From NCBI GenBank assembly GCA_009859145.1, contig VRVR01000022.1:274857-338856 (forward strand): DNA of 64,000 nucleotides, read 5' to 3'. The notes under the pieces were generated by a model. That model worked only from the letters and a program-made list of their open reading frames with translations, was not told the origin of the DNA and did no database searches. Made by a program: the position numbers and the translations under genes. This DNA comes from Andalucia godoyi And28. Its lineage: Eukaryota > Protista > Jakobida. Positions 2,846 to 30,169 of the stretch are shown here, piece by piece (position 1 is the first letter of the stretch; the number at the start of each line of letters is the position of its first letter).

Positions 2846-5800
2846 TCAGTCGTTGGTCCATTGGTTCGTACGAATTGGCGAGGCAATTCCACGGAGATCA
2901 ACGGATGAAGGGTCTTTGCCCTCTTCTCGGAGGAGTTCTTGGTATAACCTTACACTCTGCTCCAGCGCAGACAGCATTGCGAAGTTCGATTTGCCAAAAA
3001 GCACAGCTCTCTGAAGAACTTCCATGACTTTGAAATAGACATTGCCCAAGCGGACGACCGTTCCGGATGCCGTTTGTGCAGGATCAAACGGACCCACGGT
3101 CAAGGTTGTGCTTTTGATGAAGATTCTTTCCGAGATGCAAAGAGTGTCGAAGCGTGGAAGATGGCGGGATTCTTGTTCGTGCATCACGGCAAGAGCGCTC
3201 TCAATGTTTGGAACGAACACAACATGTCGGAGCAGTCGCTCCACGACTGCCATGTCTCGTCGGCTGTGCAAGGGTTCAAGAATATGGGTAGCCCTTCGAC
3301 ATCCATGCCGGCGCACGTACTCAGGCAGCGGGAATTCCTTGTCCGGATGCCCAGACCCAGAAATATGAACAACTGGTAAACGACAAGACAAGCACCTCTT
3401 ATATTCGTCATCCGTTCGAGCTAAATAGCGTCCCAGCACATCCGAGAACTGCCAGCAAAGTAGGGACCCGAGTTCCGCAATCGACTCGATTGTTTCATCA
3501 AGCTCGCTTTTTGGGGCACGAAGAACGACAATATCCACCAGTTGATCTATTCCAATGCAGTTCTTATGTTTTGGCCCAAGCCGAGTAAATGGTTGCATCT
3601 TCGAGCGTAAACTTGCTCGTAACCGTTGCAGCTTGTCCATCGCAGAACCCAGGTCGGCGCTGGACGAAATGGAGAATTGCTCAGCCGTAATCGATCCCGT
3701 AATATCATTCAGAACGCGCTGGAGGACGGCGAAGCGGTACCGAAGATTGTAATCCGATCTCCGGAATAACTCACATGCATCAACCGATGTGCTCTCCAAT
3801 GACGTGCGCACGTAATCTGCGAACACCTGTACCAAGTCCACTTCCACAGTCCACATGTGTGGAGCAAAAAACCGCCGACGCTGCTCCATATATGAGACCT
3901 TGAAAACGCGGGGCATGTCGCACAGCAAACTGTCAGAGTGGAAAATGAAGACTGGACGGTCATCCTTGACTTCTTGCAAGCGATAGGCGATAACATCACA
4001 AATCACGTCCACAGATTGCTGAACAATATGCCGATCTGCGAAATCGAGATACCCTCCTTCAATGATGAGAGAAACCTCCAGAGTCGGCGCACAGCTTCCT
4101 TGGTCAGCACCAACTAGAAAACGTGCCTCAAGACGTCGAACAAAGCCCACACCATCTGCCATGCATCTCTCCAACAGTAGTTCCGTTGGTGCACCACCAC
4201 CCAAACTTCGAAGTTTTCTTCCAGTGCGGCTTTCCGCACCTCTGCCGTTCTCCAGCACGCAGAGAGAGAACTGAAGGGCAGCTTCCTGTTGATCGGGATC
4301 AAAAACAATGGTAACATCATCGACAGCGCATTCCCCATCAACAAATTTCGACGAAACCGTAATCCTGTCAAAGGGAAATATCTTGCAATGGACACCTAGT
4401 ACAGCAACTCTCATATCATTCGCTACACCAGACGTGACAGAATTCCCACCGACATCGAATAGCCGGAGCTTCAAACAACGAAACGCAAACATCGCTTGCA
4501 CAGGGAGTCGGCGCATTTGGGGATGATCTTCCAGTTTCCAACCGTCGATTTCGTAGAGGCGAACCGTACTAGGAGATCCAGGTACTACATTCACATACAA
4601 CGCATCCGTTGTCAACGAAAATTCATCGAAACTCAACCGGAACACAATTCCCACGCAACCAACATGGGCCACAAACGAAGGACATGAAAGCACTATGCAG
4701 TAGCCACCAATCTGAAGGATTGGATTTTCTGGTAAAAAATAGTGGTCGCTCTGGATGTGGCCCGCTGATTGCACTGCAAAATGGGAAAACTGAGAACGCA
4801 CGTCCGTGAACGGTGTTCCCACATCACTGTCCACCATCTGTATTTTGGAGGGTGCATCCGGTGAGAACGGTAATGCATTTCCAAAGCGGTCCGTCATTCG
4901 AACGTACATTTCTGGGAGCCCTGTCCCACTGGCCACTTCGGGAATCTGAGCGCTGGCAGCGTCGACGTCTTTCCAGGAAACAAGCAACCGTGACGGCAGC
5001 TCGGCTCTGAGATGAAAACTCAGATCAATCCCAAATACGGGTATCAATGCATTTTTGAACCGGAGCGAAATGACGTACGACCCGTAGTTTGTGAGCGTAG
5101 GGAAAACGGAATCCACAAGATACGACGACAATGAATAATAATCGACTAGTAGCTCACCACCGTTGATTGCGTGCTCACAAACTACGATTCCATTGCACAG
5201 TGCTTCCACACGCGGACTATCAGAATCGTGAAACATAGCGAAATCCCCATCGGCAGCGAGCAAACGAAACCGTATGTCCGGTATCCTGGACCCAACAGGC
5301 ACAATCCCAGTGAACTGCATGCTAGGAAAGGAATCCGATGTGACATCCGAATCTGCCTTCAGAATATGGAACGGGTCCTCGATGGCGGCAGTGCAGGGGT
5401 ATCGCGAAGCTTCCACTAGGACAGTAAGAGAACACGCTGCTACTTCTGCTGTTGCTGCTGTTGCTTCTCTGTCATTTTGTCGGCATTCAATCTCAAGCAG
5501 AAATTCGCCGTTAACGGGAGGCACAAGAGTGCGATATTCTGGCAAACAGATATGCACGACTGAGGAAACGGGAAAGGGAACTGCGGCTTTGATCGTAGGG
5601 AAGCAGAGAACAGCGCTACAGGGAAATGGTACTGGGCTTCCGAATCGATCGAATGCTGCCACCGTAAATGGAGGAACAGACGTTCCGGACCGAATTCGAG
5701 GCATTTGGTTTGCCGATGTTCCTGAGAATTGCGCCCGAATCGAGCAAAAAGTACCTGCACAGACGCTGCACGACAACTCCGTCGAGCCCAGGAGTTCGAG

Positions 5801-8800
5801 GCTTTCATTAAAGCCCGCAAGCAAACCACTGTCCTTTTCCGCGGGTCCGAAGAGGTCAATCTCGAGAAAACAGGATTCCGATTCCCCAAAAAAGGAAAAG
5901 TGATCACGTTCGTCTCGGAAGAGAATGCACAAGCCGTGCATCACATACTGAGATTCATGCGATTCATAAACAAAGGATACTGGAGGCATTGTCAAATAAA
6001 ACCGGGGTGATTTGATGCGAAGTCGAACAGCCTCGTCGGTGAGAACCGGATCTAGTGAGATGGCATTATTCATATCATCGTAGATCTTAAGGCAGAGTGT
6101 AAATGGAACATCTACAGACAACTGAGGTTGCGGAACACTGGCCATTATCCGACGAACAACGCTGTTGGTGACATGGACGGCCAACTCAAGATCCCCACAG
6201 ATGCTTTCCTCCAGATCAGAAAGCAGGAATGACGATTGTTCGAGAACGTTACGCTGCAATCTGCTCTTAAACACAAGAACATAATCGGCGCAGCCGTTAA
6301 ATTCCAAGACATGGGATGCATCTGCTACACACTGAAAAGGATACTCTTTGATGATATGTCCTCGAACAAACTTGCCGACCTCGGAGTTCCATGAAGATTC
6401 GTACACTTGTAATGCTACCATGAAGGGAGGGTCGTCCAGAGGCGAGCAAAAGTCGGGCAACCGCAATAGCGATCTCGGAGACGAGCATATCCTCTCTCCA
6501 AACTCCCGCGAGCAGCAAAATCGCGTGGTAAAATGGTACGTGCCTTCCGACAGAGTGCACGCGCCCGACGTGCAAGAGTTCGATGAGACACGACGAGTTT
6601 CCTTGGTCATGATTCCGGCCTGAAGAACGCTGGAGAGGACCAATCGGTGATCTGGAATGTGCATTCGAAAAAACGAAAACCGAGCCTCTGCCTTCGCTCT
6701 GTCAAAACGCCTTCCGTTCAGCAATAACTGAGAAACAGCAACGCGGTAGATGCCAGCATCATGGAACAAGTCCGCAGGAAGCAAGCGGATATTTGCAATC
6801 GCATCAGCGGCCTCAATCGTTTCTGCTTGCGATGCCGACCAGTTGTCCACAGTGAAGGACACGCATTGAATGGGAAATACACCGTTCTCGTCCACATAGA
6901 AAATCTGATTTGAAGCTGATCCGGAAGGATCATCACCGACACAATCCACCGATCGAAGAGGAGCTAAATTAAATGCACTTCCACGAAGCACGCAGCGACT
7001 CCATGACCCGCTGGGACTCAAAGGGCTACCACTATGAAACCTCGAAAGTTCAGCAAATCCATCTTCGCGAGCATGACATTCTCCCGCCCACTCGTAAACC
7101 GCCGGTTCCCATGGAGCTACTGCGATTCCCGCGATATCAAACACTGTCAGCAGATTGTCAAATCTGGAGGAAAACTTGTCTATGCAGAGCGGGAACTCGC
7201 CATGGAAGAACAGCTGGCCACGGATACGCTTCAGTGCTGGAGCTGGAGCCAATGCACTGTCGCTTCTGAAGTGCGATGGCAACAGGTACTGATATGGGAG
7301 CAGTTTGCCGTTCCAATACACTTCGCACACATATCCACGATGTGGGCAGGAGTCCCAGTCAGCCAAACACGTTCTCTCGTCATTTACAGCGTCTTCCACG
7401 CAATCTAGATCCAGGCGCTCCGACGGATCCGGAGGCAGTGACTCCTCGTTGAAAAACACCGGAAAGTACTTGAGAATAATTTTTGCACAACGACAAAGGT
7501 CAAGTACGAGTGGTGCGCACGACGACGCAGACATGAGACCTCGATCATATGCATTTGGATGGCTATTGCAGAGCTGGCGAATAATGGTGTTTCCTTGCAC
7601 ATCGGCACCTCGTACCGATATGTTGAGTGGAGGAATCGCTCTGCAAGGTCTTGGAACGGCCGGTTTCAAAGCGTTGGAGCGTGGAAAGCCACGATCATTC
7701 AAGTAATAATAGAAGGCGTGGGCCAGTGAGGTGGAATACGAGTCAACAAGTGAAATGATGCATTGGTTTAGGAGCTCAGCAGGGTCGAACAAGTGCGTGG
7801 AGTCCCTCTGAAGAACTCTGCTGAATGGCATCAGCATCTCCATGCGAAGTTTCGAAATAACAATGAGGGTGTACGAGGAGCATCTCCGATGCATGTCCAG
7901 CCACTGAGCCGATAGACCCGTAGAATGCTCTTCTTCTGAAAAACAAGACGGATCTTCTGGAATGATCTCGTTCAGCGAATTCTCGAATGCTCGAAACGAG
8001 TCTGTCGGAAAGGCCATCAGCTTTTCTGCATCTATTTCCACCGAGTATGTAGGATACCCTTCCTTCCTTGTGATAACTCGAAGCAATCGCCCAAGGGAAA
8101 ACGCAGCACGCTTCGCTCCCACTCCAAACACGCCCAGCCTTCCGTTTGCAAAAAACGGAAAGTCTTGTGGATCCCGAGTCTGTGCCTCTCCACGATGAGT
8201 CGGGATCAGTTCCTTTGGCACTGAAAATGCAAAGCACTCAATCAACTCGCGGTCTGTCATTCCGCATCCGTCGTCAGAAATCATGATAAACCCAACATCC
8301 CGCTTCTCTTGAAATTTGAGAGGACCCGGGACCGGATGAAACGAAACTTCGATATTCTCAGCGTTTGCTTCGATCGCGTTGTCAATAAATGCGGACAAAT
8401 AGGAATGGGTCGGGTGCTTCCACGCGTTCATCTTTGGGATTGGGCGTACGTCAAAAGGATGGACAAACAGGATGGGATTCAGTCTGTAGCTTGAAAACCC
8501 AAACGTAAACTCTCGACACTCTTGTCCGACGTGCCGTACAATGATGACGACGTTCACATGATTGCGAAACCACAAGAAATTCGCATCTGTGACGGTCATG
8601 TATTCAAATACAGCATTTTGCACTGATTCTCCATCCTTTCTTTCGTCGTGACGGTCGCGATCCATACCTGGATCACTGCCTGTGCGTGCGTCTTCGTCCT
8701 CGTCGTCATCAACCGAGCAGCCAAATCGGCTTTTGTGAAGCCTTGCTACGCACTCTACATGATCAGCATTCGCTGGATTTCCTCCATCCTTTTCATATGC

Positions 8801-8902
8801 AGACAACGCACACTCCAGCAGATGTGTCAAACTGCGCATAAACAAAAGATTCCCAAACAACCGGTCCACAGGCGCCAGAATGCTCACAGCAATCGGTCGC
8901 AT
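2846..8902 (-). CDS. SMCHD1: SMCHD1/GMI1-like protein: GHKL ATPase, long beta-rich linker, C-terminal SMC hinge-like region
   Basis: About 2018-aa uninterrupted ORF (first ATG 8902; start uncertain). GHKL motifs FIDNAIEA, DDGCGMT and LGVFGVGAKRAAFSLG. SMCHD1-typical VYWNGKLLPY and KRIRGQLF. C-terminal IAELGSLLCWQFSDVLGRYLARTDD resembles the SMCHD1 hinge. Confidence 0.8.
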   Translation of the reverse strand: MRPIAVSILAPVDRLFGNLLFMRSLTHLLECALSAYEKDGGNPANADHVECVARLHKSRFGCSVDDDEDEDARTGSDPGMDRDRHDERKDGESVQNAVFEYMTVTDANFLWFRNHVNVVIIVRHVGQECREFTFGFSSYRLNPILFVHPFDVRPIPKMNAWKHPTHSYLSAFIDNAIEANAENIEVSFHPVPGPLKFQEKRDVGFIMISDDGCGMTDRELIECFAFSVPKELIPTHRGEAQTRDPQDFPFFANGRLGVFGVGAKRAAFSLGRLLRVITRKEGYPTYSVEIDAEKLMAFPTDSFRAFENSLNEIIPEDPSCFSEEEHSTGLSAQWLDMHRRCSSYTLIVISKLRMEMLMPFSRVLQRDSTHLFDPAELLNQCIISLVDSYSTSLAHAFYYYLNDRGFPRSNALKPAVPRPCRAIPPLNISVRGADVQGNTIIRQLCNSHPNAYDRGLMSASSCAPLVLDLCRCAKIILKYFPVFFNEESLPPDPSERLDLDCVEDAVNDERTCLADWDSCPHRGYVCEVYWNGKLLPYQYLLPSHFRSDSALAPAPALKRIRGQLFFHGEFPLCIDKFSSRFDNLLTVFDIAGIAVAPWEPAVYEWAGECHAREDGFAELSRFHSGSPLSPSGSWSRCVLRGSAFNLAPLRSVDCVGDDPSGSASNQIFYVDENGVFPIQCVSFTVDNWSASQAETIEAADAIANIRLLPADLFHDAGIYRVAVSQLLLNGRRFDRAKAEARFSFFRMHIPDHRLVLSSVLQAGIMTKETRRVSSNSCTSGACTLSEGTYHFTTRFCCSREFGERICSSPRSLLRLPDFCSPLDDPPFMVALQVYESSWNSEVGKFVRGHIIKEYPFQCVADASHVLEFNGCADYVLVFKSRLQRNVLEQSSFLLSDLEESICGDLELAVHVTNSVVRRIMASVPQPQLSVDVPFTLCLKIYDDMNNAISLDPVLTDEAVRLRIKSPRFYLTMPPVSFVYESHESQYVMHGLCILFRDERDHFSFFGESESCFLEIDLFGPAEKDSGLLAGFNESLELLGSTELSCSVCAGTFCSIRAQFSGTSANQMPRIRSGTSVPPFTVAAFDRFGSPVPFPCSAVLCFPTIKAAVPFPVSSVVHICLPEYRTLVPPVNGEFLLEIECRQNDREATAATAEVAACSLTVLVEASRYPCTAAIEDPFHILKADSDVTSDSFPSMQFTGIVPVGSRIPDIRFRLLAADGDFAMFHDSDSPRVEALCNGIVVCEHAINGGELLVDYYSLSSYLVDSVFPTLTNYGSYVISLRFKNALIPVFGIDLSFHLRAELPSRLLVSWKDVDAASAQIPEVASGTGLPEMYVRMTDRFGNALPFSPDAPSKIQMVDSDVGTPFTDVRSQFSHFAVQSAGHIQSDHYFLPENPILQIGGYCIVLSCPSFVAHVGCVGIVFRLSFDEFSLTTDALYVNVVPGSPSTVRLYEIDGWKLEDHPQMRRLPVQAMFAFRCLKLRLFDVGGNSVTSGVANDMRVAVLGVHCKIFPFDRITVSSKFVDGECAVDDVTIVFDPDQQEAALQFSLCVLENGRGAESRTGRKLRSLGGGAPTELLLERCMADGVGFVRRLEARFLVGADQGSCAPTLEVSLIIEGGYLDFADRHIVQQSVDVICDVIAYRLQEVKDDRPVFIFHSDSLLCDMPRVFKVSYMEQRRRFFAPHMWTVEVDLVQVFADYVRTSLESTSVDACELFRRSDYNLRYRFAVLQRVLNDITGSITAEQFSISSSADLGSAMDKLQRLRASLRSKMQPFTRLGPKHKNCIGIDQLVDIVVLRAPKSELDETIESIAELGSLLCWQFSDVLGRYLARTDDEYKRCLSCRLPVVHISGSGHPDKEFPLPEYVRRHGCRRATHILEPLHSRRDMAVVERLLRHVVFVPNIESALAVMHEQESRHLPRFDTLCISERIFIKSTTLTVGPFDPAQTASGTVVRLGNVYFKVMEVLQRAVLFGKSNFAMLSALEQSVRLYQELLREEGKDPSSVDLRGIASPIRTNQWTND

Positions 8903-9280
8903 GATGAACAATCGCACCAAGTCTCACCTCGTCGCCGCCGTCCCAACAACAACAGCATGAAAGTTCAGCGCATTCGGCGCAATACCCTGGAGCAACAACG
9001 GCCAAAAGAATGCGGGAGAAACAGGAAGTGAATAATTGCTATAGTCATGCATAATAATAATAAATAAATAAAATAAAGGAAACCCAAAAACAAAACAAAA
9101 CAACAAAAAACGCGGCGAACCGTAGTCGGTTCCGTTGAACCTCAAACGTGTTTCTGGACTTTCGCTCAGAAGCCGCCGAAAGCTGTGCTGGTGTTCCTTC
9201 CGTCCTCTTTTTGTTCTACTTCTGCATATGCGACATTCGCTTTCGCTCACAGGGATAGGGACACGGATACTCGCACAATC

Positions 9281-9687
9281 ATGTCATTCTTTTCATCAAA
9301 GCCCGCTGCGGCGACTGGAAAATCAGAGGCCGATGAAATTGTTGGACGGATCCGCGAAGAAATGAACCAGCAAGCTGCGCAGGATCTCTTTCAGCGAGTC
9401 GCAGAAAAGTGCTTTGCAAAGTGCATTTCCAAGCCTGGATCAAAGCTCGATGCAAATGACCAAGCGTGCCTTGCAAGATGCGAAGACCGTTACATTGATG
9501 CAATGAATGTCATTTCACAGGCTCTCCAGGACCGATCAAATACCGTACGTGGCTGTTATTTCCCTCTTCCCTCCTTCTTTTATTATTATTATTCTTTATT
9601 ATCATTAATATTAATAATTCTTTGCTGTTTTTTAATATTTAATTTATTATTTTAATATCCGGATGACAGATGGAACAAGATTCTTAA
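9281..9687 (+). CDS. TIM13: Small Tim chaperone, Tim13-like; two exons 9281-9544 and 9670-9687
   Basis: Twin CX3C motif (KCFAKC...ACLARC, followed by DRYIDAMNVIS). A GTACGT donor at 9545, AT-rich interior and GACAG acceptor ending at 9669 give a phase-0 join to ATG GAA CAA GAT TCT TAA. Confidence 0.85.
9545..9669 (+). other. Spliceosomal GT-AG intron in the Tim13 gene
   Basis: GTACGT...CAG boundaries, very AT-rich interior. Unspliced reading gives an implausible hydrophobic low-complexity tail. Confidence 0.7.
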
Positions 9688-9972
9688 TCATGATGCATGA
9701 CGATGACAACGTCCGCGAGACACCCCCCCGCACGCTGCGCCACGGACAAGAAGGACAAAAACAGCGAGTAAAGCCCAACACCATCGACAGTCTGTTATTG
9801 TCATTATCATTATTATCATTATTGTTATTTTTTTAAAAACTACTTATTCTTGTATCATTTTGCGGATTAGACAGTTTCCAACAAGTTCGTGACTCCAAAA
9901 ACCTCTACGTCCATTGCCTGGTGCAACAACAGCAAGCGGAACTCATCGCGGCACACGGTAGCACAGCGCGAC

Positions 9973-10722
9973 TTACGCAGTTTTTCTCATTGGTGGGGAT
10001 GCAAAGCGTCTTCTGACGTCCCTGAGTTCCGCATCCGTGGCTGGACCAAACGATCCAGAGGATTCCCGAACCCAAATAGCGCGGTCTGTCTGCGTGGCCG
10101 TTGGCGAAACATCGACGAATCGGTAGCGAACACGCGGAGTCATGTCATTCTTGCAGAGTGCCGTTGCAAACTGGTCCTCATACGGCACGAGCGGCTTCCC
10201 GCGGATCGCAGCCAGCTGATCCTCGACAGCAGTCGCAGCCGACTCGGGCGCCGCAAGATCCTCGTCGCCGACAATGTACATGCGACCCGGAGTCTTCAGT
10301 CCAGCAACCTCCTTCTCCATCCTCTCCTTGTCGTCCGAGACAGCACCAGCACCACCCTTCTTGGCTGTGCGCTCCTGGTACTTTGCGACAAACCGGACAT
10401 TCGTGATTGACTCTGCAACATCAAGCGGCGTCTCCACAGGAGAAAACGGCGATTTTGCAATTGCGAGAATTCCTTGGATACGGGCTACAGAGCATCCAAA
10501 CTTTTGAGAAAGTGCAGTCAGTGAGTTCACGGCCGGGTTTGATGCGTGAAGCTGGACAATCTCAGCTCGAGCTGCCGGAGAAAGCATGACAATTGTCTCG
10601 GCATTATTCACAGACGATGCCGAGGCCGATGCCGACGATGATGACGATGACTTGGACGACTTGTCTGCAGATGACGACGACGGGCGCGTCGCGGCAAAAC
10701 GAACCAATAGCCGACGAAACAT
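9973..10722 (-). CDS. Mitoribosomal protein mS45 (Bot1/MRPS35-like)
   Basis: Presequence-like MFRRLLVRFAATRP. Bot1-type helix-turn-helix LSPAARAEIVQLH...LSQKFGCSVARIQGIL. C-terminal RFVDVS...IWVRESSGSFGPAT motif. Confidence 0.7.
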   Translation of the reverse strand: MFRRLLVRFAATRPSSSSADKSSKSSSSSSASASASSVNNAETIVMLSPAARAEIVQLHASNPAVNSLTALSQKFGCSVARIQGILAIAKSPFSPVETPLDVAESITNVRFVAKYQERTAKKGGAGAVSDDKERMEKEVAGLKTPGRMYIVGDEDLAAPESAATAVEDQLAAIRGKPLVPYEDQFATALCKNDMTPRVRYRFVDVSPTATQTDRAIWVRESSGSFGPATDAELRDVRRRFASPPMRKTA

Positions 10723-10963
10723 GGCTCCTCGGGGATGAAACTCAGCTTCTTCTTTTAATGTCTAATACTTTAATTAAAAAAAAAATGAATTTAAAAATGA
10801 ATTTAAAAAGAAATTTCTAAAAATTAAAAATTAAAAAAAAGAAAAAGTAATAATGGCGTCTCCAATCCATCTTGGAAACAGAAAAAGGGCGATAAAGTAC
10901 GTAAGGTGATCATGCGCATGTCAGCCTTTCTGTGGGATACGCATTTTTACGTTACTTAATTGC

Positions 10964-13900
10964 TCATGGTACGCGACCGGACTCGATCATTTCTGCATAT
11001 TCGCGAGATTGCAAAAAGAGAGGGAACATGGACTGCTCCATGTCGCGTCGGACCTCTTCCACAGCCGAATCAAAAAGATTACGAGGAGGATTGCTGGACG
11101 ACGCTTGGTACAATGATAAGATGTGTCGCCGGGTGGCTTCGTTGATGTTGATCGTATCGAACGAGTCGAGGGAGATGAATCTTTCAATGATCACACGAGA
11201 CTTCAGCGCAGACCGGGGTACAGCGCTCTCTTGCTGGAACTCGCGGACAGAATTGTAAAAGTTCAAACCATCCGGATCAAAATTGTTCTCCACAAAAGAC
11301 TGGAAATACTGACACATGTGGCGATCATTCAAAATCATTAGCAACGCCGATGCAGAGGACTTCGCATTGGCGGACGATGACGAGCGAGCATTCGACGCCG
11401 ATGACGAATGGTGATGATTAGCGTGCTGCAGCTGTTTCAACGGCACTACCGCTTCCTCTTCGTCGTCATCCAGCACAATCTCAATCTCATTCTTGTTCGC
11501 TTCCTGCGACGACCGACTCTGCGACGTCGGGGCAGCACGCTGAGGCGCTGCGGCCTCAACAGAGGCTTCCTCTTCATCATCATCCGGATTGAATTTGTAC
11601 GCCGGAGGAGCAACTACAGAAGAGGTCAAAGATGGGGTTGGCTGTTGTGGCGACGGCGGATGCTGAGTTGACACGGGCAGGTCGCGCTTCTCCAGGTTGA
11701 GACGTAGCAGCTTCTCTGAAATCTCCCTTTGGAAGGGAGAAGCCGAAGAGGAACTGTTGGATGCGCTAGGAGACCCAGGAGACAGTGGCTGGTTCGCGTG
11801 AGAGCGAGGACGGGGCATGCGCTCTTGAGATTTCGAGAACGATCGCTCGCGCTTCACGCGCGCAGATACTGCTGCCACGCGCGGTGCCAAAGCCTTTGGA
11901 GACTCTGCGGCGCCGTCGGACAACAAATTCGGGGATACAGGTCGGAGCGAGACTGCCTCCTTGGGAATTGCAGACGACAAATTCGGGTCGTCAAACTCAC
12001 GAGACAGGAATAACACGGCAGCCTGCAGAGCATCCACCGTCGGTTCGAGCATTTCCGAAAACAAGACGGCTCCATCTTCCACAACCGCATCATCAGAATC
12101 GCGAGGAAGAGCAACCTGCAAAAGAAGCAAGGCGCTGGCGCGAACGCGCTCCGCAGACGATGCGTATCGGCTGCACCAGCTCCAGAACTGCTGATCCAAC
12201 CGGGAGAGCAAAGGCCGGAATGCAACAACAAGAGTTGGCCGGTATGCTTCGCCCATCGATTCAAGCAGCGAGCGTGTCCATCTGAACAGCATCTCGAGCT
12301 GCAAGGAGCGCTGGTCAAAGATCGGAGAACGAGCACCGAGGGGCGGCAAAATGACTCCGAGAATTTGTCCGATGTACAGCCACATAGGAGACGAGGCGTC
12401 ATCCCCCAGAAGACTCATAATAGCGGAAGCCAAGCGCTTCGAGAAAGTCTGCGATGACAAGCGACTGGCTGGATCCTGCGAAGCAAATGCCCGCAGAGCC
12501 TTGATTGCTGAGAACCAGCCATCAACGATGTCTGGCGACAGCCCATCAATCGTCCCTTGATGCTGCTCCATGGCAAATGCAACATCCAGGCATACGCCCT
12601 CAACATCTTTTCTATTCCCAAGAGACAGTCGAAGAATTGATGGCGTCAGGGCAATCAACGTTGTAACATACTGGAAGACCGTGGGATGAATGGATGCACA
12701 GGAAGACGGGACCACCTGGACATACCGAGGAGAAAATGCTTGCGCAAAGGTTACGAGTAGCCGGAGTGCCAGAGGCTCGCATTCATTTCCGACATCCGCC
12801 AATGCCGGAAGAAGAAGCGGCTGGATTCCATCAAACAAGGACGTTGCTGCGCTTGACGATCCCAGAGAACATACGGGCACTTTCCAGTCCGCGACCAAGT
12901 CGATTCCATTCGGTCGATTCATGTTGAAGAATGTTTCGAAACAGATAGAATCCTGTGCAATCGTGTCGAGCAGGGGAATTGCGCTGCGATACAAGAGCTG
13001 AGAAGCAGTGACCTGCGACGGCTGCTGGGAACGCTTGACGACGGAATGCACAAAAGAACGCATTAGAGCAATCGAGGAGGAGAGCATTGCAGGGCTTTCA
13101 TGCAACACGTTACGCTTGGAAAGGTCCTGTGCTGCCGCGGTAAGAACGCGCGCACACTCAATGGCTCTTAGGAGGGAGGGAGCAAAGGCAGACTCACTCG
13201 TACCCAGCGCAAGAATCTTCCAGAGCAGCCTGCGCTTCGTGGTGGAGCGAGGTTTCGCACGCTCCGCTTTTCGCAAGGACCGCTCTGCCGCTTGAATCGC
13301 CCGAAGCAGGTGCGTCTGCACCAAGAACAGCACTCGGGAATTCATCGGTCTCAAGACCGAACGAAAGACTGCCAGCGCCTTCAAACAGATGCGATGATGC
13401 GCATGCACGGCATGATCTGGAAGAACGACACGCGATGAGGATGGGAAAGCAAACTGCAGGGACTCATGCCCCAGCAGCTCCACAAAGTACGGAGACACTG
13501 ACTGGGAACTTCCAGACATCGTCTGGACCAGCACTCTGACAAACTCGTCTACAAACACCACGGGGCCCTTGGACGGATCCACTTCGCTACTCGACCATGC
13601 GAACCGGACGTTCGGCTGCTGCAGCAGGAAAGCATACGATCGTAAAGCCGTTGCACGACTTGCTTCTGACCCTTGAAATTCCGACGCTTGCGCCATCATT
13701 ACATTGCTGAGGAACATCCGAACCTGGCTGGCATCAATATGTCGGTCGTCCGCGTGGATAAGCGCAAACAAGATGCACACATGAAGACGTTTCTGCAAGG
13801 CCGCAAAGTGATTCGTATCGCAAGCGAGATCCACAAGAGTCTGGAGGACAACCGCACAGCGACATCTCCAGTGCTGAAGAGCCTGATCAACAGAATCAAT

Positions 13901-16900
13901 ATGTCTGCGGCGTGCCGCTGCCACAAAGTTCTTCACGAACTCCGCACGATTCGGCTTTTCAGAGACAACAACGGCAGCCTGCGATGCAGATGATGATGAA
14001 GCTTCTGCTTCAGCACCAGCAGCACTGTTTGTCTCGGCTTTTTCATCCTTGATGACTGCAGCCTGAGCAGCATTTTCAACATCCGCCACAGAGCTCAGAG
14101 ACGCTGCCGCTGCTTCAGTCTGCGCCTCGGACTCTGCTGCATGAGCAACCAACTCTGGAGCACTGCAGACCTCGGACGGCTTTTCAGTTTCGAATTGCTC
14201 CTTGTACGCAGCAGCAGCCTGTTCACGAGCAATGACCTTGCTGAAGTCTCCAATGCATTCGCGGTAGCGCTCCGCGCTGAGTTCATAAACAAGTGGCAGC
14301 ACAACTGCGTCCGCATGCTGGTGATACAAGAACGCAAGAATCTCCGCAGCAAGTGCTTTTCCACTCTTCTGCATTGCATCATTATCGTTCGCAAACTCCA
14401 AACCTGCGGAGACATCGACGAGAATGGACACAACACGAGGAAGATTGACCTGCTCCTCATCCTCCGCCAGAGGGGCTTCAGCAAACGACTGCCACATCTT
14501 TCGCACTTCGCTGGCGGCTCCATTGACCGAAAAGAAAGTTGTGCTCACCGACAACAACGTAGTGACCATGTAGGTCGAGTCCTTCGCGTATGTCGACAAT
14601 CCAATGTTCCCAAGCCACGGGGTGACGATAGGAATCATCCACGCACAGGGTTTGCGGGATTCGATCATTCGCATAAAAGCGTCCTTCACAATGGTCAGCG
14701 ACAACGGCTTCAGCTTCAAGTTCGATGCCAGCAATCGAGACACCAGAGAGGCGTGCTTTCGTACAGACTCGATATGTCCAGAGGAGAACACCAGACGGAA
14801 ATACTGGAGATCGTCCAGCAGGGTAGCAGCACGGAAGATCTTCACGACAATGCACAACGATTCGTAAGCAGCCAGGTGAATCTCTCGCGCCTCATGATTC
14901 AAGAACCACAAGAGCAAGACAATCACCGAAGACAACACATCATCGGATAAATGAATACGACTCTCAAGGGCACCAATGTCAATTTCTGGGAAAGCGACGT
15001 ATGTGTTTTGTGTGAACGCAAGAATGAGGTCGTGCACTTGACGATGCTCGTCTAGACCACTCAGCGGGGCCGGAGGTGCATTTCCAAGCGTGGACTCAAA
15101 GCCAGAGGCATCAAACTTTGCGGGAACAAATACTCGGGACAGAGCTCGAAGCAAGGCACACCGATGAGCTTCTTCCTCAGCAGTTGAATCCTTGTCCAAA
15201 GAGTCGTACATGACCTTGAGCAACTGGTGCAGCAAGATGGCAGAGTTGTTATTCAGAATCAAGGCGTCAATCACATGATACCTCAAATATTCCAAATCGA
15301 TCCACTGATCCAGCTTTTCGTTGCTCTCCTCTAAAATACGACCAAAATGCGGGACAATAGAAAGAGCAATATGCGCCTCCTTCACAATAGCAGACGCCAG
15401 CACGTCCATAGTAGACAACGTCGATTGTTTGACAGCAGCGTCCTTTTCTTTGGACTGTACGAGCGTCGCCGCCTGCGAGCACCGCGGATCAAAAGGAGAA
15501 GCCTGTCGAATCCGGCCGATCGGCAACAGCATCTGCACAAGAAGACGTCGAAGCTCCACAGTGGACTCGGGAAGCACAGACAAAACCTGCTCCAACGACA
15601 CAATCAAATCAAAAGCTGACACCAATTCGACTACCGCAGTAGCAGCATACTTGGACACCGGGCCACGGTGAAACGACGAAATGCGACCGACGTCCTCAAA
15701 GGTGATTGCTGTTAATCTCTGCCAACTCTGAAGAATCATTCGCAGGGCGGCGTCGGCGTTGGACGGCAAAACGTTGAACGCCACATCGCGCATGACCGGG
15801 AGAGAGAGCAACACGAGGCGATCGCCGTTCTTCTTGCGCATCTTGGACAGCGATTGAACTGAAGACTGCGGTACAGACTTGATCACAGGAGTCGATGATC
15901 CTCCACGCTCCTCGCGAATACCAAACAGGCGCTGCAAAACAGACAGCGACAGCGACGAATGAGTAGATGCCAATGCAAACGAAGCGGCGTAACGCACCCA
16001 AGTGACATCAGCAGTAAGCAGCGGTAGCACTGTTTCCACCAGGGAATCAAAGAACGCAGATTCCGGAACAGAATCTGCTCCAGCCCGTTCGGCTGTGGTC
16101 TTCGATCCAGGGGCTTCCTCGACTTGGTCTGAGAACGAGACATGCTTGCGTGAGTCTGACGAGGAAAGAGGGGTGCCCGGCGCTGCCGCTTCCGGTTCCG
16201 TCTTCTCTTGGACGGGAGTCGATCGCTGAACAGAGGTCGAAGAGAATAAAAAGCAAAGCCCCCAAAAGAACATCAAGGCGTAATGAGACCCAAAAATACC
16301 TTTTGCCTTATTCTGCTTTTCCGATTTCTGCAATTGCTCTTCGCTCAAAGGCACTTCTGGTAGCAACGCAAGGCGTTTCAAGACTCGATCACGAGCCAAT
16401 CTGGCGATATCGACCTTGACATCACACAACAGTTCACGAAGAACGTACCCATATAGCAAAGTGTTGTCAGTATCCAATGCAGCAAACAGCGGAGCTGGCT
16501 CTGATTCCATTTGGTCCTGCAGAACCTTGAAGTACGGGTCGGCGACTGCATTCACACGATACGCATTTTGAAGCTCCGGCGTAGAATGCACGACAATCGG
16601 ACGGTCAACGACGATTCTATTGTTTGCATCATCGATCAGACACTTGTTGAACGCACGAAGAACAAGTTCCTTCTGCCACTCCGATTCTAGTTTCACGGGC
16701 AGCCGCTGGCGGACCTGAGAACTGGCCATGGCTGCTACTTGCTCCAGAACACGAAGGGCGAGACGTCGTACGACACCAGAGTGATGTGCGAGGAACGGCA
16801 AGCAAGACCCGTAAATCTTGTCAACCAAAGCATCAGAAGGCCCATTTGTTGATGAATAGTCCGATGAGCGATGCCAGAGGTTCAGAAAACACAGAACGTT

Positions 16901-19324
16901 GTCCAGCAAGGTAGAGACGCAGGATTCGGAAGCATATGCGTCGTTCTGAAGCAGAAGCACCGTTTGTTCCACAATAGTCGAACGCTGCTGTGACGAATTT
17001 TTCGCAACAAGAGATTGGAGAGCGTGGGACGTTGCAATCGCAAAAAGCGTCTCAAAATGAACCAAAAACCGTCCGAGAAATTCTCCCCTCTCGAACAGCA
17101 TCGAGTCTGGAGTGTGGACAGCGGAAAGGCAGCGAACTGCTTCCACATAAATTCGCAGATACCGCAGCTTGTCTTTGGTAATGCTGCCACGCAAAACATT
17201 GGCTTGTACTTGTTTTGCGCGGTCAGAACGAGAAAGGGTTTGTTCTGGCACGCGAGCGTCGTACTGATAGATATCTTTGACGAACTTCTGCTGTGCCTTG
17301 AAATACGAAGATCGGTCTTCGAGGCTGTCCGTCGTAGAAATCGGCATTCGTTTCTTCCCTTCCGAGCCGAATGCCACGTTCTCCCATACCGATACGACAT
17401 TTTCCAAGGACGCATGGTCAGAAACTGCCCTGGAGTTCTTCACATGAAACTCAATCTTCAAATCCTCATCTTCCTCCGCACTGGCTGCAGAAGACGGAAT
17501 GCTTTCCGATGATTCTTCTTTTTCCGAGCGCTCGGCAAACATACGAAGCGCCTCGGTTTCAAAGGAATCCGATTGATAGTAGGTTACGGGCACGTACTCG
17601 GGAACAACAGACACTCCCGAGTTCCATCCACCAATCTCACGATCGCACAGCGGCAACAAAAACACCACGGCCGTTGAAAGCAGCCCTTTCAAACTTTCAG
17701 TGGCCTCGACGCTGAAGCTCATCAAATGGTCCACAACACGGTTGTCTAGAACTGCTCGAAGAGCACGAATTCCAACTGCATATGCCTCGTGAGACTCCTT
17801 CGGCTTGTCCTTCGCAAGAAGCGTGTGAAACACTGTCTTGCCCAAGGGCAAGCTCTGCAGCGTGATCGTGACCAAAATGTCCACGTACAATCCGTGATGC
17901 AGAAGTGAATCAAACAATGATTTCTTGCCAACAAACAGAAGGTCAATAAACGTCGTCAATCGACTATCCAAGGAGTTCAAGTCATCATCATATCGACTGC
18001 GAAGACCAGCAAAAGAAGGAAAGCCCGAGTCGACTGCATCGTCATCACCCTCAGTGGATTCTCCATCCGACTCGACGTCTTCTGCGCCCAACTGCACACT
18101 TCCCGCGGGAGCTGCACCGGAAGCTGCAGGCTTCTGGAACATAGAGTTACGTCGACCCTTGACGAACGAATTTCGAGGAGCAACAACGTTTGGTGAAGGC
18201 AACGAGGAGCCGTCGTCTGCAGAGGCGGCGGCTGAGGACGAATACACGACACTCTCCAGCGAATTCTTATCAAGAGTCACAGACAATGCCAAATACGATG
18301 GCAATTTATCATTGGACACGTGCCTGCCCCGCAAAAACGTAAGAATGCCTTCCAAGACAGCCGCCATTTGCTTCTTTGAACCATAGTACGAAGATACGGA
18401 TTTTTTGAACAAAAGGAAGAGGCGCTCAAATTCTGTGCGCGGAGCATGCGCCAAGCAAACAGCCATGATTTGCAGACCCATTTCCAGAGTGTCGTCTGAC
18501 TTGATCCATTTTGCGGCAAGAGTGGAGATCATGTTGAGGAGCACGTCATCCAGAAACACGCCCGGCTGCAAGCCGTTCACTGCTGAGAACATTGCGAATG
18601 CAAAAGGATGTCTGGTTTTCTTCGAAACGTCGATGCAGACAAGGCAGTTCCGGATGAAGGATGTCAGAGAAGAAGAGTCCTGTGCAGACATTATACGCAA
18701 ATCTACTCGGGAAATGATTTTGCAAGCCTTCAGCAGATCCACATCTCCAATTTGTTTGATGCTTCCTGGCTGGAACATTGCAGCCCACTTATCCAGAACG
18801 GCTGCAGAGGACCATCTCGACAAACCTTCCAGAAGCAAAACAAGAGATTCAGAATGCGTCGAATACATGCTGAATCCGAGATCAAGAATGCTTCGAACGA
18901 GCGAGGCAGGAATGTCAGCTGCAGGCGCTGCATGAGCGATAACAGCCAGTGTGTCAACTGCAACCCGCGACAAATACGATTTCACAATCATGGCATCATG
19001 CTGACCTTTTGAATCATAGTGTGGACATGACAGCAATGCAGCAGACACGAGAGGGCTTGAGACATCTGCAAACGTCAAATATGTTGCCGCAAATGTCGCC
19101 GGAGAGGCCTTTGCAGCGCTGGAGAGAGTTCGAAGATGCGTGAAGTAGCCTTTTGAAGACGGGAACGACTGCCAAAGCTGCGCATCAAAGACCTCTCTCG
19201 TGAGCTTCTTGTTCTTCTTATCTGGAACATATGGAACAGAGAGCAAGGTGTCCATTTCCCGGCTCAGAATAGAAAGCAGTGTCGCCGCCAACGACTGCGC
19301 GGTATGTGTAGCAAGCGTCGGCAT
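10964..19324 (-). CDS. FRY: Furry/Tao3/Mor2 (NDR-kinase scaffold) homolog with a C-terminal RGS domain
   Basis: About 2786-aa ORF (first ATG 19324). HEAT/ARM-like helical protein matching Furry N-terminal motifs (LDSRLTTFIDLLF, AVGIRALRAVLD, FLGRFLVHFE...ATSHALQSLV, LPFLAH...VRRLALRVLEQV). S/P-rich linker, then an RGS fold (ILNDRHMCQYFQSF...LNFYNSVREF...IIERFI...ININEATRRHI...NLFDSAVEEV...MFPLFLQSREY). Confidence 0.8.
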   Translation of the reverse strand: MPTLATHTAQSLAATLLSILSREMDTLLSVPYVPDKKNKKLTREVFDAQLWQSFPSSKGYFTHLRTLSSAAKASPATFAATYLTFADVSSPLVSAALLSCPHYDSKGQHDAMIVKSYLSRVAVDTLAVIAHAAPAADIPASLVRSILDLGFSMYSTHSESLVLLLEGLSRWSSAAVLDKWAAMFQPGSIKQIGDVDLLKACKIISRVDLRIMSAQDSSSLTSFIRNCLVCIDVSKKTRHPFAFAMFSAVNGLQPGVFLDDVLLNMISTLAAKWIKSDDTLEMGLQIMAVCLAHAPRTEFERLFLLFKKSVSSYYGSKKQMAAVLEGILTFLRGRHVSNDKLPSYLALSVTLDKNSLESVVYSSSAAASADDGSSLPSPNVVAPRNSFVKGRRNSMFQKPAASGAAPAGSVQLGAEDVESDGESTEGDDDAVDSGFPSFAGLRSRYDDDLNSLDSRLTTFIDLLFVGKKSLFDSLLHHGLYVDILVTITLQSLPLGKTVFHTLLAKDKPKESHEAYAVGIRALRAVLDNRVVDHLMSFSVEATESLKGLLSTAVVFLLPLCDREIGGWNSGVSVVPEYVPVTYYQSDSFETEALRMFAERSEKEESSESIPSSAASAEEDEDLKIEFHVKNSRAVSDHASLENVVSVWENVAFGSEGKKRMPISTTDSLEDRSSYFKAQQKFVKDIYQYDARVPEQTLSRSDRAKQVQANVLRGSITKDKLRYLRIYVEAVRCLSAVHTPDSMLFERGEFLGRFLVHFETLFAIATSHALQSLVAKNSSQQRSTIVEQTVLLLQNDAYASESCVSTLLDNVLCFLNLWHRSSDYSSTNGPSDALVDKIYGSCLPFLAHHSGVVRRLALRVLEQVAAMASSQVRQRLPVKLESEWQKELVLRAFNKCLIDDANNRIVVDRPIVVHSTPELQNAYRVNAVADPYFKVLQDQMESEPAPLFAALDTDNTLLYGYVLRELLCDVKVDIARLARDRVLKRLALLPEVPLSEEQLQKSEKQNKAKGIFGSHYALMFFWGLCFLFSSTSVQRSTPVQEKTEPEAAAPGTPLSSSDSRKHVSFSDQVEEAPGSKTTAERAGADSVPESAFFDSLVETVLPLLTADVTWVRYAASFALASTHSSLSLSVLQRLFGIREERGGSSTPVIKSVPQSSVQSLSKMRKKNGDRLVLLSLPVMRDVAFNVLPSNADAALRMILQSWQRLTAITFEDVGRISSFHRGPVSKYAATAVVELVSAFDLIVSLEQVLSVLPESTVELRRLLVQMLLPIGRIRQASPFDPRCSQAATLVQSKEKDAAVKQSTLSTMDVLASAIVKEAHIALSIVPHFGRILEESNEKLDQWIDLEYLRYHVIDALILNNNSAILLHQLLKVMYDSLDKDSTAEEEAHRCALLRALSRVFVPAKFDASGFESTLGNAPPAPLSGLDEHRQVHDLILAFTQNTYVAFPEIDIGALESRIHLSDDVLSSVIVLLLWFLNHEAREIHLAAYESLCIVVKIFRAATLLDDLQYFRLVFSSGHIESVRKHASLVSRLLASNLKLKPLSLTIVKDAFMRMIESRKPCAWMIPIVTPWLGNIGLSTYAKDSTYMVTTLLSVSTTFFSVNGAASEVRKMWQSFAEAPLAEDEEQVNLPRVVSILVDVSAGLEFANDNDAMQKSGKALAAEILAFLYHQHADAVVLPLVYELSAERYRECIGDFSKVIAREQAAAAYKEQFETEKPSEVCSAPELVAHAAESEAQTEAAAASLSSVADVENAAQAAVIKDEKAETNSAAGAEAEASSSSASQAAVVVSEKPNRAEFVKNFVAAARRRHIDSVDQALQHWRCRCAVVLQTLVDLACDTNHFAALQKRLHVCILFALIHADDRHIDASQVRMFLSNVMMAQASEFQGSEASRATALRSYAFLLQQPNVRFAWSSSEVDPSKGPVVFVDEFVRVLVQTMSGSSQSVSPYFVELLGHESLQFAFPSSSRVVLPDHAVHAHHRICLKALAVFRSVLRPMNSRVLFLVQTHLLRAIQAAERSLRKAERAKPRSTTKRRLLWKILALGTSESAFAPSLLRAIECARVLTAAAQDLSKRNVLHESPAMLSSSIALMRSFVHSVVKRSQQPSQVTASQLLYRSAIPLLDTIAQDSICFETFFNMNRPNGIDLVADWKVPVCSLGSSSAATSLFDGIQPLLLPALADVGNECEPLALRLLVTFAQAFSPRYVQVVPSSCASIHPTVFQYVTTLIALTPSILRLSLGNRKDVEGVCLDVAFAMEQHQGTIDGLSPDIVDGWFSAIKALRAFASQDPASRLSSQTFSKRLASAIMSLLGDDASSPMWLYIGQILGVILPPLGARSPIFDQRSLQLEMLFRWTRSLLESMGEAYRPTLVVAFRPLLSRLDQQFWSWCSRYASSAERVRASALLLLQVALPRDSDDAVVEDGAVLFSEMLEPTVDALQAAVLFLSREFDDPNLSSAIPKEAVSLRPVSPNLLSDGAAESPKALAPRVAAVSARVKRERSFSKSQERMPRPRSHANQPLSPGSPSASNSSSSASPFQREISEKLLRLNLEKRDLPVSTQHPPSPQQPTPSLTSSVVAPPAYKFNPDDDEEEASVEAAAPQRAAPTSQSRSSQEANKNEIEIVLDDDEEEAVVPLKQLQHANHHHSSSASNARSSSSANAKSSASALLMILNDRHMCQYFQSFVENNFDPDGLNFYNSVREFQQESAVPRSALKSRVIIERFISLDSFDTININEATRRHILSLYQASSSNPPRNLFDSAVEEVRRDMEQSMFPLFLQSREYAEMIESGRVP

Positions 19325-19652
19325 TCTAGATCTTTTCTCTGTGTCGCGCTCTTGACGTCTGACCAAAGACTAACCAACAAAAAAAGACGACGAGAAACTA
19401 GCCCACAGAAAAGAAAGAAAAAAGAGACGAAAAAGAGAAAGGGATGAAAATATTATTACGCAGAGGACGAAACTAACACTTTTAAAAAAAGAGACGAGAA
19501 GAAGTAGGAAGAAGAAGAAACAAATAGAAGATGAAAATGCAAAACAAAATAAAATACGATGAAAAGGAATACACATAAAACGAGAAAACCTTTTTGCCAA
19601 GCGAGAGGAAGACGATGTGGGGCAGCGGGGCCTTTCGTGGGAGCACGGTCGA

Positions 19653-28468: not shown

Positions 28469-28705
28469 AACGTAAAGACCAAACATTTATTATTATTATT
28501 ATTATTTGATCGCCCTCGTTTTTGGCTTTCATTTGTCTGTTTTCCCTCTTCTTCTCTGCTCAAGATTCGACGCATGCATTCCTTCTGGAGCAAACAGACA
28601 TATCAGGCAAGTGCATTTATTTACAACAACAATAACAACAACAACGACAAAAAAAAAAGAGGGAGAGAGCACGACGGAAAGGTCTGTTGCCCCCGATTCG
28701 CTGAG

Positions 28706-30169
28706 CTATTCCGACGACGGCATGCGTCGACCGGCGAGCATCTCCATTGGTTTTGCAAACTGCGGCTCGACAGGTCGGTCTGCAAAGACGCTGTCAACAA
28801 AGGCCTGGAAGACTTTCTCTTCGTTTCCGAGCTGCTCCCACGCCTTCTGCGCCTCGAGCTTCCCTCGAATCGCCTCCTGTTCCTTCCCAAGTCTCTTTTC
28901 AGCGTTCTGCTTTCTCTGGAACTGCATCGTCTGAATCGCCTTCTTTTTTCTCGCCTCTGCATCTCGCCGATCCTCCTCTGCAAGAACATCCGCAAGCTGC
29001 CGAAGCTGCATCTGGACCGCTCCCCTTGCCTCCCTGTCTCGCTCTGCGCGTCGCTTCTTCTCCGCGATCTGTGCATCACGCGACATCTTTGTCGCTGCAA
29101 GATACTCGCTCTTCCTCCGAGCATCCTCCCGCTCTCTTTCAGCCCGGGCTTCCTCAGCGGCCCGAACCTGGCCATCTACCCGCGCTTCTTCCGTCGAGCG
29201 CATTGCCGCAAGCATTGCCGCCTGCTCATCAATCAGCTTCTGTCTCCTTGCCAACTGCGCCCCAAACCGCTCGTCTTCTCGAGCTTTCCTCGTTGCTTCC
29301 TTCGCTGCCTTTTCTGCTGCATACTGAGCAATCTTGTCTTCCTCCGCCTTTTCCTGCGCGCGCTCTCTCTCTCTCGACCTTCCAAGCTCCATATTTGCAT
29401 CCCGCAGCTCTCTCAGCCTGGCCTTTCCAGCTTCTCGCTCCCGCTCACTCTTTTCCTTTTCCTCTCTCGCCCGTTCCTTTTCTCGCTCGCGCTCCCTTGC
29501 TTTCTCAGCCTCCATAGCTTCCGCTTCTGCCGCCTCCCGTCGCTGCTTCTCGCCAATCTGCGCGGCACGCTCATTCGCAAGCTTCAGCGCTGCGTCTCTC
29601 TTTGCAATTGCATTACTCACCTGCTTATCATCAAACGCAGCCCATGTCGACTCGAGGTTCGCATGATGTTCGCGAGCCTTCCGCGCCTCATATTCCTCCT
29701 TCTTGTGGTGTGCATCGATCTGTGATGCGCGGCCCTGCAGACACTCGGAAAGCAACAGCCGAGCCTCGAACGAACGGACCTTGTCGGACGATGTGCGCAG
29801 CGAGGCAGCATCGGCCTTTGCAAGAATCGCCGCGCGCTCCGCAGCTCGGCGGGACTCCTCCTGAGCATCCAGTGCTCGCAGCCGTGCTTCATCGGCTGCA
29901 AGGCGCGTCTGGGCGGCCTGAAGCTGTGCTGTGCGAGCTCCATCGAGTGTGTTGGACCACGTGGACACTCGCGCATCGGACAGCGCCTTCAGCCGAATGC
30001 GGTCTTCTTCAAGCGCTGCAGTTGGCGAGTATGATGTCGATGCATACGACGGAAGTCCCGGCGAACCCGATGCCGAAGAAACCGTCATCGACTTTAACCG
30101 CTGCAGCTCATGCGTCGACACGAAGGACTGGCCAGAACCAGGGTGTGTCGCAACATCATATCGAGTCAT
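28706..30169 (-). CDS. Trichoplein-homology (TPH) coiled-coil ciliary protein, CFAP210/CCDC173-like
   Basis: RLKALSDARVSTWSNTL...SDKVRSFEARLLLSECLQGRASQI followed by a long E/K/R/A coiled coil. Confidence 0.7.
   Translation of the reverse strand: MTRYDVATHPGSGQSFVSTHELQRLKSMTVSSASGSPGLPSYASTSYSPTAALEEDRIRLKALSDARVSTWSNTLDGARTAQLQAAQTRLAADEARLRALDAQEESRRAAERAAILAKADAASLRTSSDKVRSFEARLLLSECLQGRASQIDAHHKKEEYEARKAREHHANLESTWAAFDDKQVSNAIAKRDAALKLANERAAQIGEKQRREAAEAEAMEAEKAREREREKERAREEKEKSEREREAGKARLRELRDANMELGRSRERERAQEKAEEDKIAQYAAEKAAKEATRKAREDERFGAQLARRQKLIDEQAAMLAAMRSTEEARVDGQVRAAEEARAEREREDARRKSEYLAATKMSRDAQIAEKKRRAERDREARGAVQMQLRQLADVLAEEDRRDAEARKKKAIQTMQFQRKQNAEKRLGKEQEAIRGKLEAQKAWEQLGNEEKVFQAFVDSVFADRPVEPQFAKPMEMLAGRRMPSSE

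Follow-up and report, generated by a model that had tools for sequence, protein, structure and literature searches.

A predicted protein of the SMCHD1 family, encoded in the 64-kb window (the whole stretch of DNA that was analyzed), has alanine at the position of the glutamate that positions the catalytic water in GHKL ATPases. We hold with moderate confidence that this residue, Ala70, is a real, lineage-specific Glu-to-Ala substitution that gives a hydrolysis-deficient SMCHD1-family module. The finding concerns one codon in one assembly.

The gene lies in an uninterrupted ORF on the minus strand (Table 1), and the predicted protein has approximately 1,920-2,020 aa. Four in-frame ATGs (8902, 8839, 8665, and 8599) are candidate start codons, and the 107 codons upstream of the Met at 8599 include an acidic low-complexity stretch. 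Residues are numbered here from the Met at 8599; Ala70 is codon 177 when the ORF is translated from 8920. The minus strand from 8416 to 8366 runs from CAC (His62) to GCA (Ala78), contains TTG TCC GCA TTT ATT GAC AAC around Ala70, and is translated as HPTHSYLSAFIDNAIEA. The first-pass annotation had reported a GCA (Ala) codon at 8392-8390 in motif I, and re-reading of the strand and its translation bore this out.

Table 1. Features of the SMCHD1-family gene and its product, with positions in the window
Feature	Position	Strand	Basis or remark
ORF of the SMCHD1-family gene	2846-8920	minus	uninterrupted, 2,024 codons including stop; collinear with the 2,154-aa protein P0001
GHKL motif I (N-box) helix, H62-A78, HPTHSYLSAFIDNAIEA	8366-8416	minus	AF2: residues 64-78 helical, block pLDDT ~78
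Codon GCA, Ala70	8390-8392	minus	position of the catalytic/water-positioning Glu (human SMCHD1 E147)
D73-N74; D73 is the i+3 "second acidic residue", N74 the Mg2+-binding Asn	8378-8383	minus	both columns invariant
E77 (Glu of "NAIE"), canonical N-box acid at i+7	8369-8371	minus	also in P0001, P0023, and L003-L006
Motif II (G1 box), D109-D-G-C-G-M114	8258-8275	minus	D109, G113, and M114 columns invariant
Motif III (G2 box), G156-VFGVGAKRAA-F167	8099-8134	minus	G159, G161, K163, and F167 columns invariant
Motif IV, Thr244	7868-7870	minus	column invariant
SMCHD1-type transducer (ribosomal S5 domain 2-like)	7172-7480	minus	PF22899; transducer alignment
Lys475 in "DKF" (family equivalent "NKL")	7175-7177	minus	K475 column invariant
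Possible degenerate SMC-hinge-like region, ~aa 1710-1810	3170-3472	minus	weak hhalign match, MAFFT pattern

To assign the protein to a family, we compared it with domain, sequence, and structure collections. A Pfam scan of the protein revealed HATPase_c_3 (PF13589, E=1.2e-13) and SMCHD1_S5 (PF22899, the SMCHD1-specific S5-like transducer; E=5.6e-8 and 33.2 bits, above the gathering cutoff of 27) and no further domain. The sole match of the protein in a HMMER search against PDB sequences was the SMCHD1 ATPase module 6mw7 (E=4.6e-13), in which A70/D73/N74 of the query were paired with A129/D132/N133 of 6mw7_A (LSAFIDNAIEA against LAALIDNSLSA). Ala is paired with Ala in this alignment because the protein deposited as 6MW7 is the SMCHD1 ATPase module carrying the E147A mutation (PMC7458401). 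When 1.84 billion cluster representatives were scanned exhaustively with HMMER, 32 matches were returned in all, comprising short GHKL proteins and SMCHD1-family proteins of approximately 1,900-2,800 aa from animals, Volvox, Heterostelium, Andalucia, and metagenomic eukaryotes. A profile of the relatives, made without the window sequence, matched this ORF alone in the window (E=6.4e-52), and the family profile search found no second GHKL copy inside the 64 kb.

Fold comparison gave the same assignment. The AF2 model of residues 1-620, built on an input alignment of 25 sequences, had a pTM of 0.67, with pLDDT of 78-91 in the motif-bearing segments, low pLDDT at residues 21-60, and a poorly modeled ATP-lid region. 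The top match of this model in a PDB fold search was 6mw7 (E=4e-20; TM 0.58-0.60, target-normalized), followed by Hsp90 and MORC at approximately 1e-10 to 1e-11, so that the match to MORC was about 9-10 orders of magnitude weaker than that to SMCHD1. The Pfam, PDB HMMER, cluster-representative, and AF2 fold results agree with one another and with the earlier description of the protein as SMCHD1-like. By sequence, profile, and fold comparison, the N-terminus is an SMCHD1-type GHKL ATPase and transducer module.

In its length and its middle region, the protein also resembles the SMCHD1 family. At approximately 2,000 aa, it is collinear with family members (relatives of 1,900-2,800 aa) and has a beta-rich middle region with repeated [hydrophobic]-x-D-x-x-G-N motifs, as in P0009, P0005, and P0001. 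Near the C-terminus, hhalign gave a weak match to a hinge-like region (E=1.3e-3, probability 18.6%), which is collinear with the Pfam SMC_hinge match of the animal SMCHD1 P0009, and a MAFFT alignment revealed a shared W / LP / LLxxxxF..A pattern in this region. The Pfam SMC hinge (PF06470) itself was matched by the animal P0009 alone and not by the window protein, P0001, P0002, or P0023; since the tested non-animal relatives lack the match too, this divergence is not peculiar to this gene. The window protein was not matched by the family C-terminal HMM, a PDB phmmer search with its C-terminal 650 aa found nothing, and AF2 modeled the last 420 aa at a pLDDT of 45, too low for the model to be of use. 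The basic KRRR-type C-terminal tail that is typical of the family is absent. Of the N-terminal UBL, no more than the final strands could be aligned with P0001 (BLASTP E=2e-4, spanning the end of the UBL and the N-box). Because P0001 retains the Glu and is equally divergent in the hinge and the UBL, the divergence of these regions is a lineage trait and not decay. With this gene, the range of the SMCHD1 family reaches a very divergent lineage of protists whose hinge and UBL are barely recognizable.

The best relative of the window protein is P0001, a metagenomic protein of 2,154 aa (loci L001/L002) that is collinear with it over the full length, in the N-terminal, middle, and C-terminal segments. 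The contigs of P0001 share the gene order of the window: a giant RGS-domain gene, MRP-L20, Tim10 on the opposite strand, and the SMCHD1-like gene. As the neighbors and their order match, P0001 is the positional ortholog. Its locus differs from the window in having an upstream nucleoside hydrolase gene, which is missing from the window. The two proteins share the lineage-specific substitutions FYYYLN, DKF, and SLP as well as the i+7 Glu, although their identity is just 25-29%. Comparison with orthologs had been proposed as a check on the alanine; unlike the window protein, P0001 retains the catalytic Glu and reads AELVDN (IAELVDNCIEA).

The DNA of the window is eukaryotic; its intron-poor genes are packed very compactly on both strands, the GC content is approximately 50%, and the gene content includes flagellar/cytoskeletal and mitochondrial genes. 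An Rfam scan of the 64-kb window gave no matches. A proteasome alpha subunit encoded in the window has 60-71% identity to those of fungi, plants, heteroloboseans, and oomycetes alike and hence does not place the lineage taxonomically. Because this subunit is only 60-71% identical across all major groups, the lineage appears to have no sequenced close relative.

We further examined how unusual Ala70 is among the relatives. Thirty of the 31 relatives that cover the motif have Glu at this position and the remaining one has Asp; a non-acidic residue occurs in none of them. Their motif is A/G/S-E-[LFI]-[IV]-D-N, the sole exception being a short bacterial-type protein with Asp. No natural variant without the catalytic carboxylate was seen among the other SMCHD1-family sequences recovered. 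A metagenome scan with an alignment of the window protein and P0001 yielded four distant bacterial MORC-like loci (L003-L006), all Glu-bearing, and a further profile search returned three proteins, of which P0157 alone covers the motif and reads Glu. The Glu that opens the N-box (E-x-x-x-N) is a mark of active GHKL ATPases (SMCHD1, MORC, MutL, GyrB, and Hsp90); in the window protein it is absent and Ala70 stands in its place. Pairwise HMMER, two multiple alignments, and family-wide conservation all put Ala at the catalytic/water-positioning Glu position, as the first-pass annotation had claimed. A shift of register was considered and rejected: within three positions of A70 there is no acid except the conserved D73. 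The closest relative in the collections searched has approximately 27% identity, and at this distance Ala70 is not demonstrably fixed, old, or selected.

The other residues expected of an active GHKL ATPase are present. N74, D73, D109/G111/G113, G159/G161, T244, and K475 were all found, in columns that are invariant or nearly so. Invariant columns in the 25-sequence alignment comprise D73, N74, A78, D109, G113, M114, G159, G161, K163, F167, G170, T244, W429, R458, and K475, and the transducer family motifs W429, GKLLP, R458, G461, and K475 all align. The nucleotide-binding motifs (Asn, DxGxGM, and G-loop), which the earlier reading had called intact, all fall in invariant columns of this alignment. 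Of the family sites conserved in at least 80% of sequences, 39/64 are kept in the window protein, 40/62 in P0001, and 40/65 in the Andalucia protein P0023, and many of the departures of the window protein from family-conserved sites are common to P0001. Tajima relative-rate tests of the window protein against P0001 with 11 outgroups were all non-significant. The ATPase module thus shows no faster evolution or extra decay than its Glu-bearing ortholog. This normal rate fits purifying selection on the nucleotide-binding module, or equally a very recent change or an error.

The consequences of the same substitution have been described in related enzymes. SMCHD1 E147A no longer hydrolyzes ATP, still binds it, and favors the dimeric ATP-bound state (PMC7458401; PMC13434421). 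In a 2026 study of MutL and GyrB, the first Glu chiefly positions the nucleophilic water, and a second acid at i+3 (MutL E32, GyrB D51) shares the base function (PMC13614785). Replacement of the first Glu by Gln leaves 10-30% activity, whereas MutL E29A and GyrB E48A have undetectable ATPase activity and have lost ATP binding despite the i+3 acid, which rescues Gln but not Ala (PMC13614785). The earlier statement that SMCHD1 E147A is hydrolysis-dead is thus sustained, and the corresponding replacement abolishes hydrolysis in MutL and GyrB as well. By analogy with these mutants, the window module is probably hydrolysis-dead or nearly so; since Ala cannot hydrogen-bond water, no meaningful hydrolysis would be expected, though D73 is present.

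By the same analogy, the module may or may not bind ATP, as SMCHD1 E147A binds it and MutL E29A and GyrB E48A do not. The "locked clamp" suggested at first reading is therefore a conjecture, and retained ATP binding together with locking of the clamp is speculative. It had also been suggested that E77, the Glu of "NAIE", might compensate for the lost residue. We reject this suggestion: E77 is the canonical i+7 acid and is present in P0001, the Andalucia protein P0023, and the bacterial L003-L006, and because these relatives keep the catalytic Glu as well, E77 was there before the catalytic Glu was lost and does not specifically compensate for it.

The loss of binding in MutL and GyrB also bears on the reading that the module is dead for both binding and hydrolysis, being either a recent null mutation heading to decay or an ATP-independent scaffold that acts through the middle and C-terminal regions. 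We consider this reading unlikely. Besides the loss of ATP binding upon Glu-to-Ala replacement in MutL and GyrB (PMC13614785), the loss of function of E147A in mouse cells (PMC13434421), the barely recognizable hinge and UBL, and the lack of a KRRR-type tail would agree with it. However, the 6-kb ORF is intact, the ATP-contact residues are all kept, the rate shows no acceleration over that of P0001, and hinge and UBL have diverged equally far in P0001, which has the Glu.

It is rather improbable that Ala70 stems from a wrong base call or from misassembly, or that it belongs to an allele that is not fixed or is specific to the sequenced clone, with the functional protein having the normal Glu (GAA). 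GCA is a single transversion away from GAA, the residue at this position is acidic in 31/31 relatives, and the remaining module looks like that of an active enzyme with a normal evolutionary rate, all of which would be expected of an error or a stray allele. Look-ups of identical copies of four window proteins, one of them the database's own entry for the proteasome subunit (P0037), also yielded no second sequence of this species. On the other hand, long intact ORFs are numerous in the 64-kb window, among them ones of 2,024 and 2,800 codons, as would be expected if errors were few. A random error hitting exactly this base is very unlikely, yet the first reading was an anomaly-seeking one, and this constitutes a selection effect. 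If the Ala codon were an error or a clone-specific null allele, it would have no wider significance.

Least probable of all is that the protein is still an ATPase in which D73 at i+3 or another group activates the water with slow but useful turnover: two acids share the general-base role in MutL and GyrB and Gln mutants keep 10-30% activity (PMC13614785), D73 and the gamma-phosphate Lys475 are retained, and GHKL enzymes are intrinsically slow so that low rates can suffice, but Ala, unlike Gln, is unable to hydrogen-bond water, MutL E29A, GyrB E48A, and SMCHD1 E147A have undetectable activity despite the i+3 acid (PMC13614785; PMC7458401; PMC13434421), and no new acid lies within three positions on either side of A70.

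Under the favored reading of a real substitution in a hydrolysis-deficient module, Ala would have taken the place of the Glu responsible for positioning and activating the hydrolytic water, in a single step (GAA to GCA), with all other nucleotide-contacting and gamma-phosphate-sensing residues retained. The likely outcome would be a module without a meaningful rate of ATP hydrolysis, in what appears to be a flagellated eukaryote that branches deeply and has a compact, intron-poor genome. Such a module might act as a nucleotide-binding-only dimerization module on chromatin, without the hydrolysis-driven "consolidation" and release cycle of mammalian SMCHD1, or it might pair with a catalytically competent paralog encoded at another place in the genome. 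In mouse cells, SMCHD1 E147A is a loss-of-function allele that neither accumulates on the inactive X (Xi) nor silences (PMC13434421), and it has been described as stuck in the engagement state and unable to consolidate (PMC7458401; PMC13434421). Because E147A is a loss of function in mammals, an SMCHD1 that is hydrolysis-dead and yet functional would have to work by a changed mechanism. That Ala is fixed and ancient and the ATP-binding residues are under selection, so that the protein would be a natural ATP-binding-only dimerization clamp or the silent half of a heterodimer, is a tentative reading that we regard as possible but doubtful.

Among known systems, mammalian SMCHD1 (6MW7) is the best match in both sequence and fold. 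Like the window protein, it consists of a GHKL Bergerat-fold ATPase followed by the SMCHD1-specific S5-like transducer, has approximately 2,000 aa and a collinear beta-rich middle region with DxxGN motifs, and shares the xxFIDNxxxA form of the N-box and the same G1 box, G2 box, Thr, and Lys. The window protein differs from it in having Ala for E147, no SMC hinge that Pfam detects, an uncertain UBL, and no basic C-terminal tail, and the identity between them is approximately 20%. The engineered SMCHD1 E147A has the identical residue at the identical position; it is a laboratory loss-of-function allele, whereas the Ala of the window protein is the natural sequence of an intact gene. The MORC ATPases and the bacterial MORC-like L003-L006 resemble the window protein in the GHKL fold and in belonging to the HATPase_c_3 family, and L003-L006 share the exact N-box IDNAIEANA with it. 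In contrast to the window protein, they keep the Glu (E-[VLI]-IDNAIEANA) and have neither the SMCHD1_S5 transducer nor the 2,000-aa architecture.

Natural loss of the catalytic carboxylate has precedents outside the SMCHD1 family. Meiotic TOPOVIBL-type subunits count among the GHKL proteins in which the catalytic Glu is naturally missing. Histidine kinases are another such group (PMC13614785), and heterodimeric ABC transporters are described as having degenerate nucleotide sites. The three groups set a precedent for a nucleotide-binding fold that outlives its catalytic carboxylate in a binding or regulatory role. These families differ, however, from the SMCHD1 family in their chemistry or their partners.

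SMCHD1 is a disease gene (FSHD2, BAMS). Its ATPase cycle has been modeled from engineered mutants, with E147A as the reference dead-but-binding allele. An intact gene of the SMCHD1 family that naturally carries an E147A-type change would test whether the fold can have a binding-only role, which residues stay constrained after the loss of hydrolysis, and whether structural studies could obtain a stable ATP-bound dimer. If the protein is indeed an ATP-binding clamp or the silent half of a heterodimer, the lineage would have kept an SMCHD1-type chromatin function without ATP turnover and would offer a natural ATP-trapped form for structure determination.

Comparison of the gene order around the SMCHD1-like gene revealed that micro-synteny was kept among the window and L001 and L002, the metagenomic contigs encoding its positional ortholog, although protein identity was just 25–49%. 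In the common order, the giant RGS-domain gene is followed by MRP-L20, an oppositely oriented Tim10 and the SMCHD1-like gene. L001 and L002 carried an additional inosine-uridine nucleoside hydrolase gene immediately upstream of the SMCHD1-like gene, whereas the window did not. The combination of MOR2-PAG1 (Furry-like, weak match) and RGS domains in the giant ORF is an uncommon fusion, and it was also kept in the metagenomic relative.

Coordinates of the conserved block and of two multidomain ORFs
Feature	Position	Strand	Description
Micro-synteny block	window 8920-19366; L001 1-15836; L002 21-12472		
Giant RGS-domain ORF	10964-19366	-	2,800 codons; weak N-terminal MOR2-PAG1 (Furry-like) match; C-terminal RGS domain
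PBP_like_2-cyclase fusion ORF	57690-60002	-	770 aa; two domains

L003–L006, which are low-GC bacterial MORC-like GHKL genes on JGI metagenome contigs, have the N-box IDNAIEANA, identical to that of the window protein. In these bacterial genes the Glu preceding the motif was intact, unlike in the window protein.

The C-terminus of most SMCHD1-family members is a basic tail of the KRRR type, which resembles a nuclear localisation signal. In contrast, the C-terminal stretch of the window protein (2849-2950, minus strand) ends in ...SPIRTNQWTND, with no basic cluster. At the other end, 107 in-frame codons (8599-8920, minus strand) lie 5' of Met 8599, one of the candidate starts, with three further ATGs and an acidic low-complexity run, DDDEDEDAR...DRDRHDERKD. 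Splice-site-like sequences were observed in this part of the ORF (GTATGG at about 8667-8672 and CAG at about 8587-8589); the region possibly contains a small intron, with several candidate start codons.

Over its whole length the window was intron-poor and very compact, and the spacing of convergent genes fell as low as 70 bp (2776 to 2846). Flagellar and centriolar proteins (CEP76, TPH, and kinesin) are among its products, as are mitochondrial proteins. A proteasome subunit search found no sequenced close relative of the organism (best identity ≤71%). The GC-richest stretch within the window (28574-30169; 57%) contained long ORFs overlapping across strands, of 383 and 256 aa on the plus strand and 487 aa on the minus strand. 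Because a Pfam domain (TPH) was present only in the minus-strand ORF, the plus-strand ORFs are probably spurious.

In the PBP_like_2-cyclase ORF, the catalytic domain of an adenylate/guanylate cyclase is fused to PBP_like_2, a domain resembling PstS-type periplasmic-binding proteins, and the product looks like a receptor-type cyclase.
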